A DNA stretch of 64,000 nucleotides from Octopus bimaculoides (GCF_001194135.2 NC_069004.1:8455942-8519941), one strand, 5' to 3'; positions 856 to 62,502 are shown, counted from the stretch's first letter. The notes: generated by a model not told the origin, from the sequence alone. Program-made: numbers and translations.

Positions 856-2444
856 TCACAATGATGTTGTTTTTTTCACAGTATGAATACGTTTGTGAAC
901 AGATAATGTACTTCTGTATGAGAATGGTTTACCACAGATATCACANNNNNNNNNNNNNNNNNNNNNNNNNNNNNNNNNNNNNNNNNNNNNNNNNNNNNNN
1001 NNNNNNNNNNNNNNNNNNNNNNNNNNNNNNNNNNNNNNNNNNNNNAGTGATATGGTTTTTCTCCTGAATGAATACGTTTGTGAACAGTTAATGTGCTTCC
1101 ATCAGTGAAAGATTTACTGCAGATATTGCAGTGATAAGGTTTTTCCCCTGTATGAATACGTTTGTGAGAAATTAATGTACTTCCATCAGAAAATGATTTA
1201 CCACAGATATCACAGCGATACGGTTTTTCCCCTGTGTGAATACGTTTATGTTTAGTTAAGGAACTTCCATCATTGAATGATTTACCACAGATATCACAGG
1301 GACATACCTTCTCCCCTGTATGAATGTATATATGTTTAGTTAAAAGATAAGCTTCAGAAAATGATTTACCACAGATGTTACAGTGACATGGCTTTTCACC
1401 TATATGAAAACATATGTGCCTAATTAAGCTAGACCTCTGAGAGAATGATTTACCACAGGTATCACAGTAGTATGGTTTCTCTCCTGTATGAATACGTTTG
1501 TGTTTAGTTAATGTACTTCCATCAATGAATGATTTACCACAAGTATTACAGTGATATGGCTTCTCTCCTGTATGAATAAGTTTTTTGTGAGAAGTTACTT
1601 CACTTCCATTACTGAAAGATTTACCACAGATATCGCACTGATATGGTTTTTCTCCAGTATGAATGCGTTTGTGGGAATGCAAATGAACTTTTTGAAAGAA
1701 TGATTTTCCACAGATATCACAGTGATATGACTTCTCTCCTGTGTGAATGTTTTTGTGTTTAGTCAAATTACCTCTTTCGGAGAATGACTCACCACAAATA
1801 CTACACTCATATGGTTTCTCACCTGTATGAATACGAATGTGACTGGTGAGGCCATTCGTCTGAGAGAATGATTTACCACAGATATCACAGTGATATGGTT
1901 TTTCACCTGTATGAATACGTTTGTGACCAGTTAAGTGGCCTCTAAGGGAGAATGATTTACCACAGGTATCACATTTATAGGGTTTTACTCCAGTATGGAT
2001 GTGCTTGTGAGTAATTAAGGTATGTTTACGCAAGAATGATTTACCACAGATATCACAGTTGTGTGGCTTCTCTCCTGTATGCATATGTCTATGTTCAGTA
2101 AAGTTTCGTCTCAAAGTGAATGATTTACCACAGATATCACATTCATAAGGGGTTTCTCCAGTATGAATGCGTTTGTGAGTAGTTAATGTTCTCAATCGAG
2201 GGAATGATTTACCACAGACATCGCAGTTATGTGGTTTCTCCCCTGTATGTATATACCCATGTTCAGTGAAGTTTCTTTTTATGGTGAATGATTTACCACA
2301 GATATCACAGTTGTATGGTTTCTCTTCTGTGTGAATACGTTTATGGTTAGTAAGGCTGCTTTTTAGAGAGAAAGTCTTTTCACAGATATCACAATGATAT
2401 GACGATTTTCCTACTTTCTTTGGCAATTCTTCAGGAGAATCCAT
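856..2444 (-). CDS. ZNF-A: poly-C2H2 zinc-finger protein, 16 fingers before the gap and at least 1 after
   Basis: ORF MDSPEELPKK... with CxxC-12-HxxxH repeats and TGEKPY linkers. An N gap lies at 946-1046. Joining tcaca/agtg across it gives CDICGKPFSYRSTLSVHKRIHTVKKTTSL* (stop at 856-858). The 3' end depends on the true gap content. Confidence 0.9.
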
Positions 2445-3227
2445 TTTTCTCTAAATTTTTTGTTTTTCATACAACAGTTATATTGATATTGTACCCTCTA
2501 TTTATTTATTACTGCACCGATGAAAACCCTTCTATTGCAATGTTTACATCAACTGTTATCTCTGTTGGTATCAGAAGACAGTAGTAAGCTACTTTCTAAA
2601 CCTGTCCAAATTTAATTGGAATACAAAATCCTCCCATTGGCTTTCTCGACAATGAAGAGGAATGTTTCAGTTGGAAGAACTAACTCTCAGTAACTTAAAG
2701 ATAAATTTAATAGGAACAAAGTTGTAGCACTTCCGTATAAAATCTTCCTTTTGTCTGTGAATGATGATAAATATACTAATATATATTTAATGCCAATGTC
2801 ATCTCATATTCTGAAATGATAGAGAAACAATGTAAGATATTGTAAGAACTTTTAAAAAATAGCAATTCAACAGACAAATTTTTCAACAATTCTATATTGA
2901 GAAACTATATAAATTTTTACTTCAACATGTACATTCTAATTTACTGTTCAAATTTTTCTTTATGGTTATTTTGTTATTTAAATTACATAAAAAACAAAAT
3001 TGTGTGAAATTTCCACATTTGCAGTCTACATCTACACCTTCAGATTGTGTAACATTACACATATTATAATAAACAACAATAATTATACATTATATCTGGA
3101 CTAGTATTTTCAGGGCTTTGCTAAAACTTGCTGTGTTAAGCAGCAAACAACAAGGAAAAAGAAAAAAAAGAAAATTTAAACACACTCTCTCTTTCTCCCT
3201 CCCTTAAAAACACATGTCCGGTATCTC

Positions 3228-3582
3228 TCACCTTCTCTCTCTCTTTCTATATATCCATACATATATGTACATGCCTACATCTATATGTATATATATATAT
3301 ACATATAGATGTATATATATATATATATATACATACAGATGTATATATATATACATATAGATGTATATATATATACATACACACACATTTATATACATAC
3401 ATACACACCAAGCTTTATCTATATCATTACCTCTCTCTCTATATATATATACATACATATAGAAGAGAGAGAGAGAGGTGTATATATATATATATATATA
3501 TATATATATATATATATATATATATATATATATATATATATATATATATATATATATATATATATATATACACACACACACA
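3228..3582. repeat. (AT)n/(AG)n compound microsatellite in ZNF-A intron 1
   Basis: Long pure (TA)n run at about 3480-3570 with flanking (ATAC)/(AG) units. Confidence 0.95.
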
Positions 3583-3809
3583 GAGTGTGTGTTTATGCTT
3601 GCTTTTTTTCTTTTTCCTTATTGTTTTTCCTTGCTTAACACAGCAAGTCTTAGCATACCAACATCAAAAGAAATCGCGCTATCTCTTTCGCGTCCTTTCC
3701 CTTACGGAAACTGCCGAATTGATGTAAATAAAGAGATGTCAGAAAAAGGATTGTATCGAAAGAACGCCCAATTCTATTTATTTACTTACATTAATACAGC
3801 ATTAAAACA

Positions 3810-59790: not shown

Positions 59791-60034
59791 AATAATTAAT
59801 AATGTGTGTAAATAATAGAATTGTGTTTTACTTGGTGGATAAGATCAATCATATTGAAGTAAAAACATATAACAATGAGAAAAGATAATAACAATGAGAA
59901 AAGTAATTATATAAACGTAAAAACTCAGCGACATTGGTAAAAGATATTTTCTTCGAGAATCTCCGATCTGGATATGATGGAGTTACGGAAAACAACTGTC
60001 AAAGCAACTGGAATGATTTATTTCGTTGAAAGGC

Positions 60035-60110
60035 TACTCTCTGCGGAGAATGATTTACAACAAATAAGACTACGATATTGAATACATTTGGGCGATCTTT
60101 TCTTTATCCA
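60035..60110 (-). pseudogene. Short degenerate ZF repeat antisense to ZNF-I, inside its intron 1
   Basis: The minus strand gives ICCKSFSAESSL. It lies at the same position relative to shared intron sequence (GAAAACAACTGT..AAG..CTGGAATG) as the remnant in H. Confidence 0.55.
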
Positions 60111-61194
60111 TAATGTTTCTTTTTGTTTGATCTTTTATAAAACTAGTAGCATCAATGAAAACGACTTCACTTATGTGTCTGGTCAGTCATGGCTGACTTG
60201 AGAACAAAACAACAACAACGTGTCTCGGGTGGAAACTGTAGTCACCGAACCTTCTTGAAATAGGAACCAAATTTCTTTCAAAATTGCGCCTAACCATCTT
60301 AGAGAGGATGGCCGGATGTGGAGCACAATGGATAATGTATTCCTAGATATATGATTGCAAATGCGTTTGGTCATAGGTGTACTTTGTAAGGAATGACTAG
60401 GAATTACGTAACGGTAACAATGGATGTTTCAATAGAGAGACGAATGTTATTGTTCACTATTCTGTAAATTGTGGTTTAGTGAATATAAGTATAGTTTAAG
60501 TGTCAACTGTTAGCTGTAATAGTTTCTCCTGTGGGAGTGAGTTCAGTCCTTAGGTAAGCCAGGATATATATGTATACTCTAATTGAAGTAATAGAATAGT
60601 TGATGAGGAGAATATCCCTGGTGTGGACAATGGGATGAGAATAATGTATCCTGTCAGTTTTGATACAGAGTTCAATTCTAATTCCTGAGAACATTACTGA
60701 ATACTAAAGAAATCCTGAAGCTACAAAAACTATAGTTTATAATCACTATTTTTTATTGTAATATATGTAACGTTACACAAATTAAAATGTAAAGTTTAAT
60801 TATTGAGGTAAAAGTTTATAGTTTATCCATATAGAATTGTAGAAATATTTATTTTTTAAATATTTTTAATTATTTACACTGTTTCTCTATCATTTCAGAA
60901 ATCAACTGACATTGGCATTAAAGCTATCATTAATACACAAAAGGAAGATTTGACACAAAAGTCGTACAACTCTGTTTCTATAGATTTATCTTTGAGTTAC
61001 TGAGAAATATTTCTTCTGTGTGAGACACTTTCTCCTCACAGGATGAGTTTGTGTTCAAGTTAAATTTGGATAGATTCATTAAAGAGTTTGCTACTGAGGA
61101 AAAATTGCAGTATAAATGGTTTGATGAAAACAGGAATATATAAGAAGTGATAAAAACACCCATTCTCTCATTTGAAAACGTAAATTCTAGAACA

Positions 61195-62502
61195 ATGAGT
61201 TCTTCTGAAGAATTGTCAAAGGAAGTAGGAAAATTATCATACCCCTGTGATATCTGTAAAAAGACATTCTCTCTAAAAAGCAGCCTTGCTACTCACAAAC
61301 GTATTCACACAGGAGAGAAATCACATAAGTGTGATATCTGTGGTAAATCATTCTCTCAAATACGTACTTTAACTATTCACAAACACATTCATACTGGAGA
61401 AAAACCATATAAATGTGAAAACTGTGGTAAATCATTTGCCTTTAGAAGATACTTAGCCAAACACATACGAGTTCATACGGGGGAAAAGCCATATCACTGT
61501 GATATCTGTGGTAAATCATTCTCTGAAAGTGATGGCCTAACTAGCCACATTCGAATTCACACAGGTGAGAAGCCATATCAGTGTAATATTTGTGGTAAAT
61601 CATTCTCTGAAAGATGTAATTTAACTACACACAAAAACATTCATACAGGAGAGAAGTCATATCACTGTGATATCTGTGGTAAATCATTCTTTCAGAAAGT
61701 TCACTTAGATACTCACAAGCGTAGTCACACAGGAGAGAAACCGTATCACTGTGATATCTGTGGTAAAGCTTATGCTGATGTAAATAGCTTATATAGACAC
61801 AAACACATTCACACAGGACAGAAACCATATCAGTGTGATGTCTGTGGTAAATCATTCAGTTACAGAGGTCCATTAACAGCTCACAAACGTATTCATACGG
61901 GGAAGAAACCATATCGCTGTGACACATGTGGTAAATCTTTCAGAGAAGCAGCTCAGTTATCAATACACAAGAGACGTGTTCATACAAATGAGAAACCATA
62001 TCAGTGTGATATCTGTGGTAAATCATTTTCTGATGGAAGTATATTAACTGTTCACAAACGTATTCATACAGGGGAAAAATCACATCACTGTGATATCTGT
62101 GGTAAATCATTCACTGAAGGAAGTAAATTAACTGTTCACAAACGTATTCATTCTGGGGAAAAACTATATCACTGTGATATCTGTGGTAAATCCTTCTCTC
62201 AAACAGCACATTTAACTGTTCACATTCGTATTCATACAGGTGAGAAACCGTATCACTGTGATATCTGTGATAAATCATTCTCTCAAACCAGTCATTTAAC
62301 CATTCACAGACGTACTCATACAGGAGAGAAACCCTATCAGTGTGATATTTGTGGTAAATCTTTCTTCCAAAATAGTGATGTAACTAAGCACAAACGTTTT
62401 CATGCAAGAGAGAAACCATATCACTGTGATGTTTGTGGTAAATCATTTTTCCAAAATAGTGATTTGACTAGACACAAAAGTATTCATTCCAAAGGAAAAT
62501 AA
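61195..62502 (+). CDS. ZNF-I: poly-C2H2 protein, 15 fingers; start [10 protein letters not shown]
   Basis: Intact ORF with the homologous ATG at 61195. It ends HSKGK*, like ZNF-E. Confidence 0.95.

Follow-up and report, generated by a model that had tools for sequence, protein, structure and literature searches.

A tandem cluster of nine poly-C2H2 zinc-finger genes in Octopus bimaculoides with constrained array ends and a variable middle

Introduction

How do zinc-finger proteins with no recognised effector domain come to keep both ends of their finger arrays alike while the fingers in between diverge, and what might the constant ends be for? An octopus/coleoid lineage-specific expansion of C2H2 zinc fingers was reportedly described by Albertin and colleagues in 2015; it ranks with the largest expansions of any gene family recorded from invertebrates, and its expression is mainly in nervous and embryonic tissue. 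The lineage-specific octopus/coleoid expansion is also the subject of Holzinger et al. 2025 (PMC12513265). In the papers whose text was searched, which treat this family by phylogeny and expression, no mention of the leader, conserved end blocks, 5' intron or per-finger selection was found. We analysed a window, the whole stretch of 64,000 nucleotides from Octopus bimaculoides (GCA_001194135.2, CM046624.1, ~8.46-8.52 Mb), in which a first-pass annotation had noted a nine-gene C2H2 cluster with shared end blocks. This observation is confirmed, and the cluster is part of the large octopus C2H2 expansion, with which it has in common the species, tandem clusters of multi-finger genes and many lineage-specific duplicates.

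Results

Gene content of the cluster

Nine tandem C2H2 paralogs (A to I) occupy 62 kb, and more zinc-finger genes lie directly outside the window. The coding sequence is a single exon in all nine genes, which have 9-35 fingers each and match the Pfam families zf-C2H2 and zf-H2C2_2 with E-values as low as 1e-245. Genes A to G are on the minus strand. Gene A (856-2444) has at least 17 fingers, a four-finger N-core at 1659-1979 and the terminus HTVKKTTSL* with a frameshifted linker, and gene B (9087-12253) has 35 fingers after overlap collapse, an N-core at 11543-11863 and a C-terminal block (C-block) at 9090-9434. Gene C (19742-20563; 273 aa, 9 fingers; N-core 19937-20257) consists of little more than the N-terminal block, and gene D (24593-27628; 1011 aa) again has 35 fingers (N-core 27002-27322, C-block 24635-25039). 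They are followed by gene E (33104-35674; 856 aa counted from MNSEEL, 30 fingers; N-core 35144-35464, C-block 33119-33523), gene F (42225-44144; 639 aa, 21 fingers; N-core 43695-44015, C-block 42297-42701) and gene G (49117-50913; 598 aa, 20 fingers; C-block 49186-49590), the leader of which has diverged. Genes H (55817-57034; 405 aa, 14 fingers; N-core 56282-56602) and I (61195-62502; 435 aa, 15 fingers; N-core 61408-61728, C-block 62167-62487) are on the plus strand.

Only two assembly gaps fall within coding sequence, in genes A and B, the remaining ones being intergenic. The gap in gene B (10529-10628) has an identical 49 nt on both flanks and is most likely spurious, because collapsing this overlap gives a single continuous in-frame ORF of 1005 aa. 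The flanks of the gap in gene A (946-1045) overlap by 1 nt and continue the same reading frame; entire 84-nt finger units could be absent there, which makes the finger count of this gene a lower bound.

Constant end blocks and a variable middle

In protein order, the genes encode a 14-aa acidic leader, a conserved first finger (SLKSxL), 0-4 extra fingers, the four-finger N-core that is collinear among the paralogs, a gene-dependent middle of 2-23 fingers and, in six of the nine (B, D, E, F, G and I), a C-block of 3-5 fingers. The fingers are canonical and TGEKP-linked throughout, with nothing besides leader and fingers. The constant blocks are real and well beyond chance, collinear block fingers having 81-95% DNA identity between paralogs against a median of 69% over all finger pairs (95th percentile, 80%), and the blocks were recovered in every gene pair by unit-level alignment. 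The four-finger block that the first-pass annotation had given to all nine genes is indeed shared by them, but its placement at the N-terminus does not hold, as the leader, the first finger and 0-4 further fingers precede it. The C-block is likewise common to the six genes proposed, save that gene I is without the fourth finger and the last one of gene B is degenerate; decayed remnants, however, which had been assigned to C and H only, also follow A. The described variation of the middle in finger number and helix residues is upheld (2-23 fingers; helix dN/dS 1.1-1.8).

Periodicities of 84/168/252 nt run through the arrays. In gene G the first three fingers of the core are doubled (50449-50685 and 50197-50433, minus strand), and gene D holds a two-finger unit in a recent threefold repeat (25649-26137, minus strand), in which D19, D21 and D23 are 98-99% identical and D20 and D22 are 96% identical. 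The constant-block helices, with Q/E/D at -1, H/N/D at +3 and K/R/S at +6, have an ordinary DNA-reading look.

Genes A, C and H are cut short, and decayed pieces of the C-block follow each of them. Past the stop of gene A (499-855, minus strand) there is a QTAHL-like piece, SQTPHFT, with several stops; past that of gene C (18927-19646, minus strand) a decayed middle and C-block are seen, with a QTAHL finger with stops, an LNSGL finger and an SVTNDSST tail; and past that of gene H (57035-57389, plus strand) FFQNSDI, xSxxL and SENSN fingers with stops. As long ORFs were kept in all three after this loss, the C-block is dispensable. An orphan C-block pseudogene fragment, F*NCDVTRHKRIH, also lies between E and F (39281-39574, minus strand).

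Divergence and selection

In comparisons between paralogs, to which all constraint figures here refer and in which gene pairs are not fully independent, the N-core has a dN of 0.113 and a dS of 0.591 and fingers C1-C3 have 0.105 and 0.556, with a dN/dS of 0.19 in both. The 1 kb upstream of the genes retains only 67-75% identity and contains indels of lengths not divisible by three, and identity rises from 53% directly before the ATG to 77% within the leader. Since dS is ~0.56-0.59 at a ratio of 0.19 and upstream identity is ~70%, the blocks are under purifying selection and are not products of recent duplication or conversion. Gene conversion as their source is ruled out by the silent-site and flanking divergence, and equal synonymous conservation, which the first-pass annotation had named as a mark of merely recent blocks that would refute its reading, was looked for and not seen.

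The constraint differs along the finger. Framework positions have a dN/dS of 0.02-0.04 in constant and middle fingers alike, whereas contact residues reach ~0.5 in constant fingers and 1.3-1.5 in paired middle fingers, the latter pairs having been picked by similarity and possibly combining non-orthologous fingers. Contact-residue ratios are low in N4 (0.21), C3 (0) and C5 (0.13), and contact positions are unconstrained in N1 and C2 (~1). With the genes paired in three ways, the pairs of each set being disjoint, helix codons have a dN/dS of 0.36-0.64 in constant against 1.1-1.8 in middle fingers, and contact residues are identical at 57-74% against 37-44% of positions (Fisher p 6e-5 to 0.03). 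The helix contact residues of C3 are invariant in six genes, though dS is ~0.8 at those codons. Diversification of the middle at helix positions, as first suggested, is thus borne out among the paralogs by both the contact and the helix ratios. Distances of the N-block and the C-block are star-like and, over few sites, weakly correlated (r = 0.37, p = 0.18).

Effector-domain and homology searches

Pfam returned C2H2 families only for the nine proteins, at E <= 0.01 as well as at E <= 1e-5. In 257 upstream sense-strand open segments, each of at least 38 aa, there was no match to KRAB, SCAN, BTB, ZAD, SET or other effector families (E <= 0.01). KRAB (PF01352) was absent from 9/9 proteins and from these segments, and no ZAD (PF07776), SCAN (PF02023), BTB or PR/SET domain N-terminal to the fingers was found in either. 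With an in-frame stop before every ATG as well, the claim that these proteins carry no N-terminal effector domain is supported for the known domains. A whole-protein search with gene I and a ten-sequence family alignment gave vertebrate KRAB-ZNFs at 30-57% identity, with no full-length octopus relative among the matches listed, and giant poly-ZNF proteins, none above 57% identity, dominated the output of an exhaustive HMMER search for representatives, which gave no ortholog information. An exact-sequence cluster look-up found 0/9 proteins in that collection, and exact-protein contig look-ups for transcript contigs matched the genome assembly alone.

Leader, start codons and putative 5' UTR intron

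The leader is a 14-aa acidic peptide starting with M, with a net charge of about -3 and a dN/dS of 0.54 as a whole and 0.33 in its core PEELPK; its nucleotide sequence CCTGAAGAATTGCCAAA is almost invariant, and gene G has a leader unlike those of the other paralogs. Leader-like sequences (EFPDEILKQIGKTSY, IDFPSEKLK and IDFTEEMPKDIEKTSY) are present in other Octopus zinc-finger proteins, O. sinensis included, and the matches listed for a profile of leader plus first finger are all of 125 aa or less, the closest of the leader type being Octopus proteins. An A occupies position -3 at each of the nine ATGs, and an in-frame stop precedes each by 1-24 codons. Genes E and F have in-frame upstream ATGs (35722 and 44168) that would add 16 and 8 aa, a point on which the earlier description is amended.

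A donor TTGAG/GTAAAAGT and an acceptor CTATTTCTCTATCATTTCAG/AATA, 91-135 nt apart, are conserved in 8/9 genes. The putative introns so delimited lie on the minus strand at 2811-2920 in gene A (donor TTGAA/GTAAAAAT, acceptor CATTTCAG/AATA), 12581-12715 in B (135 nt), 20884-21001 in C (118 nt), 27893-28005 in D (113 nt), 36119-36224 in E (106 nt), 44491-44587 in F (97 nt) and 51246-51351 in G (106 nt), and on the plus strand at 60808-60898 in I (91 nt); in gene H the conserved acceptor ends at 55457 (plus strand), with no donor identified. The same acceptor element is found upstream of a related O. sinensis gene, and the annotated O. sinensis relative has its start within the same exon. From the intron-like element to the ATG, the putative 5' part of exon 2, there are 4-12 stops in each of three frames, and the putative 5' UTR of each gene contains 3-9 upstream ATGs, an uncommon feature in a leader read by scanning. 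A non-coding exon 1 followed by a short 5' UTR intron is probable upstream of every coding exon, a model drawn, like the start codons, from conserved signals; the non-coding exon 1 proposed before fits both the conserved donor/acceptor pair and the stops in all frames. A YAG conserved 6 nt before the ATG in 8/9 genes, preceded by purine-rich sequence without a pyrimidine tract, could be an alternative acceptor. Another acceptor-like element, TTCCAG/TTAAATTTGG, ~170 nt before the ATG, was rejected, its AG being found in C and F only and gene I having a shifted AAG.

Discussion

We consider it probable that the nine poly-C2H2 paralogs, lineage-specific and arranged in tandem, combine constrained ends and a reshuffled middle into a DNA anchor together with gene-specific targets. 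An old duplication burst produced the nine paralogs, with a silent divergence of about 0.55-0.6, followed by birth-and-death evolution with in-register gain and loss of middle fingers, of which gene D is a very recent case. The recognition helix of the middle fingers changed fast, and the array ends stayed in place and preserved much of their helix sequence through purifying selection. Premature stops in A, C and H removed the 3' part and left shorter ORFs to survive. The linker and helix chemistry suggests sequence-specific nucleic-acid binders, most likely of DNA, in which N-core and C-block would provide an anchoring specificity common to the family and the middle fingers a target of its own for each paralog. 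Any regulatory output would have its source in the short conserved leader, the fingers themselves or occupancy alone.

The constant-variable-constant pattern could instead be mostly a by-product of tandem recombination, where unequal exchange would gain or lose inner units and never edge units, so that the edges keep ancestral sequence under generic finger constraint without block-specific function. Such an origin would suit the in-register duplications, recent in D and older in G, the 0-4 fingers between finger 1 and N-core, the three losses of the C-block, the star-like, weakly correlated block distances (r = 0.37) and the fact that the low dN/dS comes mostly from framework residues (0.02-0.04) equally constrained in the middle. 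We nevertheless regard it as unlikely, for the end-block helix codons change 2-5x slower than those of the middle at similar or higher silent divergence, and C3 keeps its contacts in six genes despite a dS of ~0.8. Slightly less credence is given to the proposal of the first-pass annotation that the constant blocks are a protein- or RNA-interaction module replacing KRAB, with the middle fingers alone reading DNA. In Ikaros, ZNF423 and TFIIIA, subsets of the fingers have protein or RNA as their ligand, and TFIIIA, ZNF423/OAZ and Ikaros are generally known precedents for finger blocks with different jobs in one array, but have no sequence relationship to the octopus genes past the C2H2 fold. Blocks under purifying selection beside a diversifying middle, the missing known effector domain in nine proteins and 257 upstream segments, the unusual aromatic at helix -2 in FFQKVHL and FFQNSDV, which are among the best-conserved fingers, the Val instead of Leu at +4 of C3 and the still open frame of gene C, nearly all N-block, are compatible with such a module; the contact dN/dS of ~1 in N1 and C2 speaks against it. 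A shared DNA-binding anchor is favoured because the TGEKP linkers are canonical, the helix residues are typical of DNA reading (Q, E/D, H, N, D, K) and three paralogs do without the C-block.

It is decidedly unlikely, in our view, that the poly-ZNFs of octopus make up a self-contained regulatory system independent of KRAB, with leader and end fingers docking a cofactor or RNA and the middle tracking targets such as SINEs. A convergent KRAB-ZNF/TE-like system, as the first-pass annotation proposed, would agree with what has been predicted for octopus ZNFs (PMC10547256). Still more improbable is a hidden effector, either the 14-aa acidic leader as a SNAG- or FiNZ-like docking motif or a coding exon further upstream that has escaped recognition and is joined at the -6 AG. 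The leader would gain from its PEELPK core (0.33) and near-invariant nucleotides, and from its likes in other Octopus ZNFs including O. sinensis, but its whole-length ratio of 0.54 and the different leader of gene G weaken this; the exon would be joined at a YAG kept in 8/9 genes, against which stand the missing pyrimidine tract, the O. sinensis relative annotated to begin in the same exon and upstream open segments without any domain.

The DNA-anchored cluster that we favour is a well-resolved case of a known type of fast-evolving gene family and not a new kind of system. Vertebrate KRAB-ZNF clusters consist of tandem, one-exon arrays with finger gain and loss, fast contact-residue change, frequent pseudogenes and truncated copies, and TE fragments interspersed with the genes, as reportedly set out, for example, by Emerson and Thomas in 2009. 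They recruit TRIM28/KAP1 and silence transposable elements. The octopus genes share these cluster properties and the TGEKP-linked C-terminal C2H2 array, but are without KRAB or another Pfam effector and have a single coding exon in place of separate KRAB exons. In PRDM9 arrays the edge fingers are stable and the inner ones turn over by in-register recombination, fast at contact positions; stable edges and inner turnover recur in the octopus arrays, though PRDM9 shows allelic variation in one gene with KRAB-like and SET domains and the octopus genes are old paralogs with no extra domain. FiNZ genes (Wells et al. 2023, PMC10547256) form a very large cyprinid poly-ZNF family with no KRAB, a glutamate-rich 28-aa N-terminal sequence and experimental support for TE repression. 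By description they resemble the octopus genes in a short N-terminal sequence without KRAB (28 aa against a 14-aa acidic leader), but are restricted to cyprinid fish, octopus belonging to another phylum.

For now the finding refines the description of a known family and does not amount to a new mechanism. The anatomy of the cluster is testable, with a short conserved leader, two helix-constrained end blocks and a middle diversifying at about neutral or faster rates; it shows which pieces to split, and the truncated copies are natural variants without a C-block. Outside the vertebrates, the cluster also provides a second system in which to ask whether transposable elements are tracked by lineage-specific ZNF families. 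A rough motif derived for the C-block from the recognition code, GCANNNGCANGANGA, had 1 match against 0.11 expected, a count that 10/100 shuffles equalled, and is uninformative. The self-contained reading, if true, would mean that a mollusc has its own version of the KRAB-ZNF/TE arms race, built with no separate effector domain, in a genome filled with SINEs.

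Finger architecture of the nine paralogs

Of the 193 C2H2 motifs detected in a six-frame scan of the window, almost all belong to the arrays of nine paralogous genes (A-I), each with its coding sequence in one exon. With the arrays split into units of 28-29 residues, the genes on the minus strand were found to contain at least 17 (A), 35 (B), 9 (C), 35 (D), 30 (E), 21 (F) and 20 (G) fingers, and those on the plus strand 14 (H) and 15 (I). G and H lie head to head across a 4.9-kb intergenic region (50914-55816) where the orientation of the cluster switches; a weak finger remnant is also present in this region at 52399-52524 (+).

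The proteins follow a common order. At the start of each stands a short leader, M-[DSN]-[FSL]-P-E-E-L-P-K-x-x-G-x-S-S (diverged in G), which is followed by a conserved finger 1 with the helix SLKSxL, by 0-4 fingers of the xRxRTLxTH and TxKxNxTEH types, by a collinear four-finger block (N-core, N1-N4: SLRGHL, xxxGL..IRIH, SERGNL and FFQKVHL), by 2-23 middle fingers and, in B, D, E, F, G and I, by a C-terminal block (C-block, C1-C5: QTGHL, QTAHL, FQNSDV, xSxxL and QNSDL). The first-pass annotation had put the four-finger block first in the protein; in fact the leader, finger 1 and 0-4 further fingers precede it. The C-terminal block that it described in six genes was confirmed, with the fourth finger absent in I and the final finger degenerate in B, and the rest of its finger anatomy was accurate apart from one overlooked remnant in gene A. 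Finger 1 of B (12116-12208), C (20426-20518) and D (27491-27583), all (-), no longer has the final histidine (HKCID) and contains three inserted residues (KEEKAEKR). Among these three genes its DNA is 95-97% identical, clearly above the 77-90% of individual N-core fingers; the likeness may mark a subfamily or may stem from gene conversion at this site.

Selection on the end blocks and the middle fingers

Pairwise DNA identity among all 196 finger units had a median of 69% and a 95th percentile of 80%, and the collinear N-core and C-block fingers shared 81-95% between genes. In a unit-level dynamic-programming alignment both blocks were recovered in register in every gene pair possessing them, and the middle was alignable in patches only. 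By the Nei-Gojobori method the N-core gave dN 0.113, dS 0.591 and dN/dS 0.19 (36 pairs), and C1-C3 gave dN 0.105, dS 0.556 and dN/dS 0.19 (15 pairs). The 1 kb upstream of the paralogs was only 67-75% identical, with numerous indels of lengths not divisible by three. Silent sites and flanks have thus diverged considerably, and the conserved blocks are explained neither by recent duplication nor by gene conversion. Equal conservation at synonymous sites, named in the first-pass annotation as the outcome that would refute its reading, was accordingly not observed.

Framework and linker residues are the main source of the low overall dN/dS, their own ratio being 0.02-0.04 in all parts of the arrays. 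At the contact positions of the recognition helix (-1, 2, 3 and 6) dN/dS was about 0.5 in the constant fingers, ranging widely by finger from 0 (C3), 0.13 (C5) and 0.21 (N4) to 1.0 (C2) and 1.2 (N1), and 1.3-1.5 in paired middle fingers, whose pairings were picked by similarity and may join non-orthologous fingers. Three alternative sets, each of four disjoint gene pairs, gave a helix-codon dN/dS of 0.36-0.64 in the constant fingers versus 1.1-1.8 in the middle, and 57-74% versus 37-44% of the contact residues were identical (Fisher p for constant versus middle, 6e-5 to 0.03 on residue identity and 7e-5 to 0.14 on nonsynonymous/synonymous counts), all these selection comparisons being between paralogs. 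The middle fingers thus diversify at the helix, as had been proposed from the sequence.

Mode of array change

The arrays change by in-register unequal exchange, as is usual for zinc-finger arrays. Tandem Repeats Finder returned 84-nt units with higher-order periods of 168 and 252 nt. A unit of two fingers (SHxxTL / TTSSAL) occurs three times in gene D at 25649-26137 (-) with 96-99% DNA identity, which reads as a very recent in-register expansion, and gene G carries an older duplication of N-core fingers 1-3. Among the six complete genes the N-core and C-block distances were all 0.13-0.22 and were only weakly correlated with each other (r = 0.37, exact Mantel p = 0.18), a pattern that fits a burst of duplications and is compatible with exchange between paralogs as well as with its absence.

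Leader and 5' region

The first-pass annotation had claimed that the proteins carry no N-terminal effector domain. In accordance with this, every Pfam family reported for the nine proteins is of the C2H2 type, and none of the KRAB, SCAN, BTB, ZAD or PR/SET domains was found in the cluster. A check independent of any gene model, in which all upstream intergenic regions were covered by Pfam scans of their sense-strand open segments (38 aa or longer, 257 in total), detected no known effector domain. These segments returned only zinc-finger remnants and three matches with E = 0.003-0.007 (Cry1Ac_D5, eIF3m_C_helix and Hom_end), of a strength that chance alone would give in 257 scans.

All nine ATGs have an A at -3 and an in-frame stop 1-24 codons upstream; in-frame upstream ATGs would add 16 residues to E and 8 to F. 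Further upstream lie two highly conserved islands, a donor-like TTGAG|GTAAAAGTTT and a textbook acceptor CTATTTCTCTATCATTTCAG|AATA, with a spacing of 91-135 nt in every gene except H, which retains the acceptor. The acceptor element was also located upstream of a related O. sinensis zinc finger gene on another contig (L004), the annotated start of which (MENELCETQVIYKTHSKRT-EFPDEILKQIGKTSY...) is contiguous with its fingers in one exon. As the 264-444 nt from acceptor to ATG contain 4-12 stops per frame in all three frames of every gene, exon 1 of the putative splice pattern would be unable to add coding sequence, which agrees with its earlier reading as non-coding. A YAG 6 nt upstream of the ATG, preceded by purine-rich sequence, is kept in eight of the nine genes and may act as an alternative acceptor. 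The putative 5' UTR holds 3-9 upstream ATGs per gene; in 7/9 genes one of them lies in the conserved CAGATGACATTGGCATTAAAG directly after the acceptor (e.g. 12570-12580 (-), the putative exon 2 start) and opens short upstream ORFs of variable length.

The leader has a mean pairwise identity of 77%, compared with 53% in the 60 alignment columns preceding the ATG. Over its codons 2-15 dN/dS was 0.54; in the PEELPK core it was 0.33, and silent sites there have diverged unusually little. Codons 4-9, CCTGAAGAATTGCCAAA (e.g. 12227-12244 (-)), hardly vary, silent positions included (dS 0.26 versus about 0.55 elsewhere), and this silent conservation hints at RNA- or DNA-level constraint near the start codon. 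Leader-like sequences before finger 1 also occur in other Octopus zinc finger models of three species. The leader is at most a candidate short motif.

Truncated copies and the role of the end blocks

Genes A, C and H end early, with broken yet recognisable C-block fingers downstream of each stop at 499-855, 18927-19646 and 57035-57389, respectively; the remnants in C and H had been noticed earlier and that in A had not. An orphan C-block fragment lies at 39281-39574. The loss in A, C and H is old, as the remnants carry several stops and frameshifts. Their open frames are nevertheless retained (495, 273 and 405 codons), and N-core dN/dS in pairs among them was 0.12-0.20, like that of the other genes. 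The protein of gene C consists in essence of the N-terminal block alone, which suggests that this block is able to function by itself, in whatever manner. Besides, a tail after the last finger is common to F (42225-42296), G (49117-49185) and the remnant behind C (18927-18990), with endings such as ESFAVTNHSS* and KSFSVTNDSST*, and looks like a decayed extra finger of the ancestor; E and I stop before it at HSKGK*.

The constant blocks had been proposed to form a protein- or RNA-interaction module that replaces KRAB, while the middle diversifies target recognition. This proposal is partly supported, as the proteins are without a known effector, their ends are constrained and their middle is diversifying. 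We favour a model in which the end blocks would serve as a DNA anchor shared by the paralogs and the middle as a variable reader, because the TGEKP linkers are canonical throughout, the helix residues are of the usual DNA-contacting kinds (Q/E/D at -1, H/N/D at +3 and K/R/S at +6) and A, C and H have lost the C-block with their frames kept. An interaction module is a live but somewhat disfavoured alternative, since the same linkers and helix residues point to ordinary DNA reading, and an indispensable effector in the C-block is difficult to reconcile with the retained frames and constrained N-cores of the three truncated genes. That the constant-variable-constant pattern is purely a by-product of recombination is also a live explanation.

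Comparison with known systems

Clustered paralogs of vertebrate KRAB-ZNFs diverge through finger gain and loss and fast change of contact residues; the present cluster differs from these genes in having no KRAB domain. A large octopus C2H2 expansion was reportedly described by Albertin et al. in 2015, and the cluster shares with it the many tandem C2H2 fingers per protein and the tandem clustering of the genes. This expansion is established (PMC12513265), octopus ZNF motifs are predicted to favour TE sequences (PMC10547256), and the FiNZ family of cyprinid fish lacks KRAB and has been described with no more than a brief acidic N-terminus (PMC10547256). The excerpts of PMC12513265 and PMC10547256 gave no description of the finger architecture resolved here or of the per-finger selection contrast, which are the new elements of this analysis, the expansion itself being already known.

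Assembly gaps and neighbouring sequences

By exact protein match the window lies on record CM046624.1 of GCA_001194135.2, the chromosome-scale assembly of Octopus bimaculoides, and the position of gene H sets its limits at about 8,455,942-8,519,941. It is AT-rich (G+C 35%) and contains 13 assembly gaps, all outside the putative 5' intron and only two inside coding sequence. The gap in gene B (10529-10628) is flanked by an identical 49 nt on both sides (window 10457-10528 and 10629-10700) and looks like an unmerged contig overlap rather than missing sequence, because collapsing the repeat yields a single uninterrupted frame of 1005 codons. The gap in gene A (946-1045) has flanks in frame with a 1-nt overlap, and entire 84-nt units may be absent from the assembly there. 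The remaining gaps are intergenic; the largest (13642-14359) is flanked by TA-rich repeats translating as YIYI runs, and a long (TA)n microsatellite occurs at 3282-3570.

Between A and B, two adjacent ORFs of 190 and 173 aa (5494-6959 (+)) weakly match DUF4371 (E = 1.7e-3) and, at E = 1.6e-3, the hAT C-terminal dimerisation domain; they are probably a decayed hAT-type transposase. A SINE-like repeat of about 145 nt is present in four copies with 68-100% mutual identity (35723-35868 (-), 22521-22659 (+), 28498-28626 (-) and 63420-63561 (-)), one of which has inserted 50-190 nt before the ATG of gene E, within its putative 5' UTR. The related O. sinensis gene has a SINE-like insertion in the equivalent upstream region, of a sequence unlike this repeat. 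The two genes that come next on the right, 3-10 kb past the window (flanking sequence L005, 14864-16012 (-) and 20862-21308 (-)), are also poly-ZNF genes and represent another subfamily, with a different C-terminus and without the N-core.
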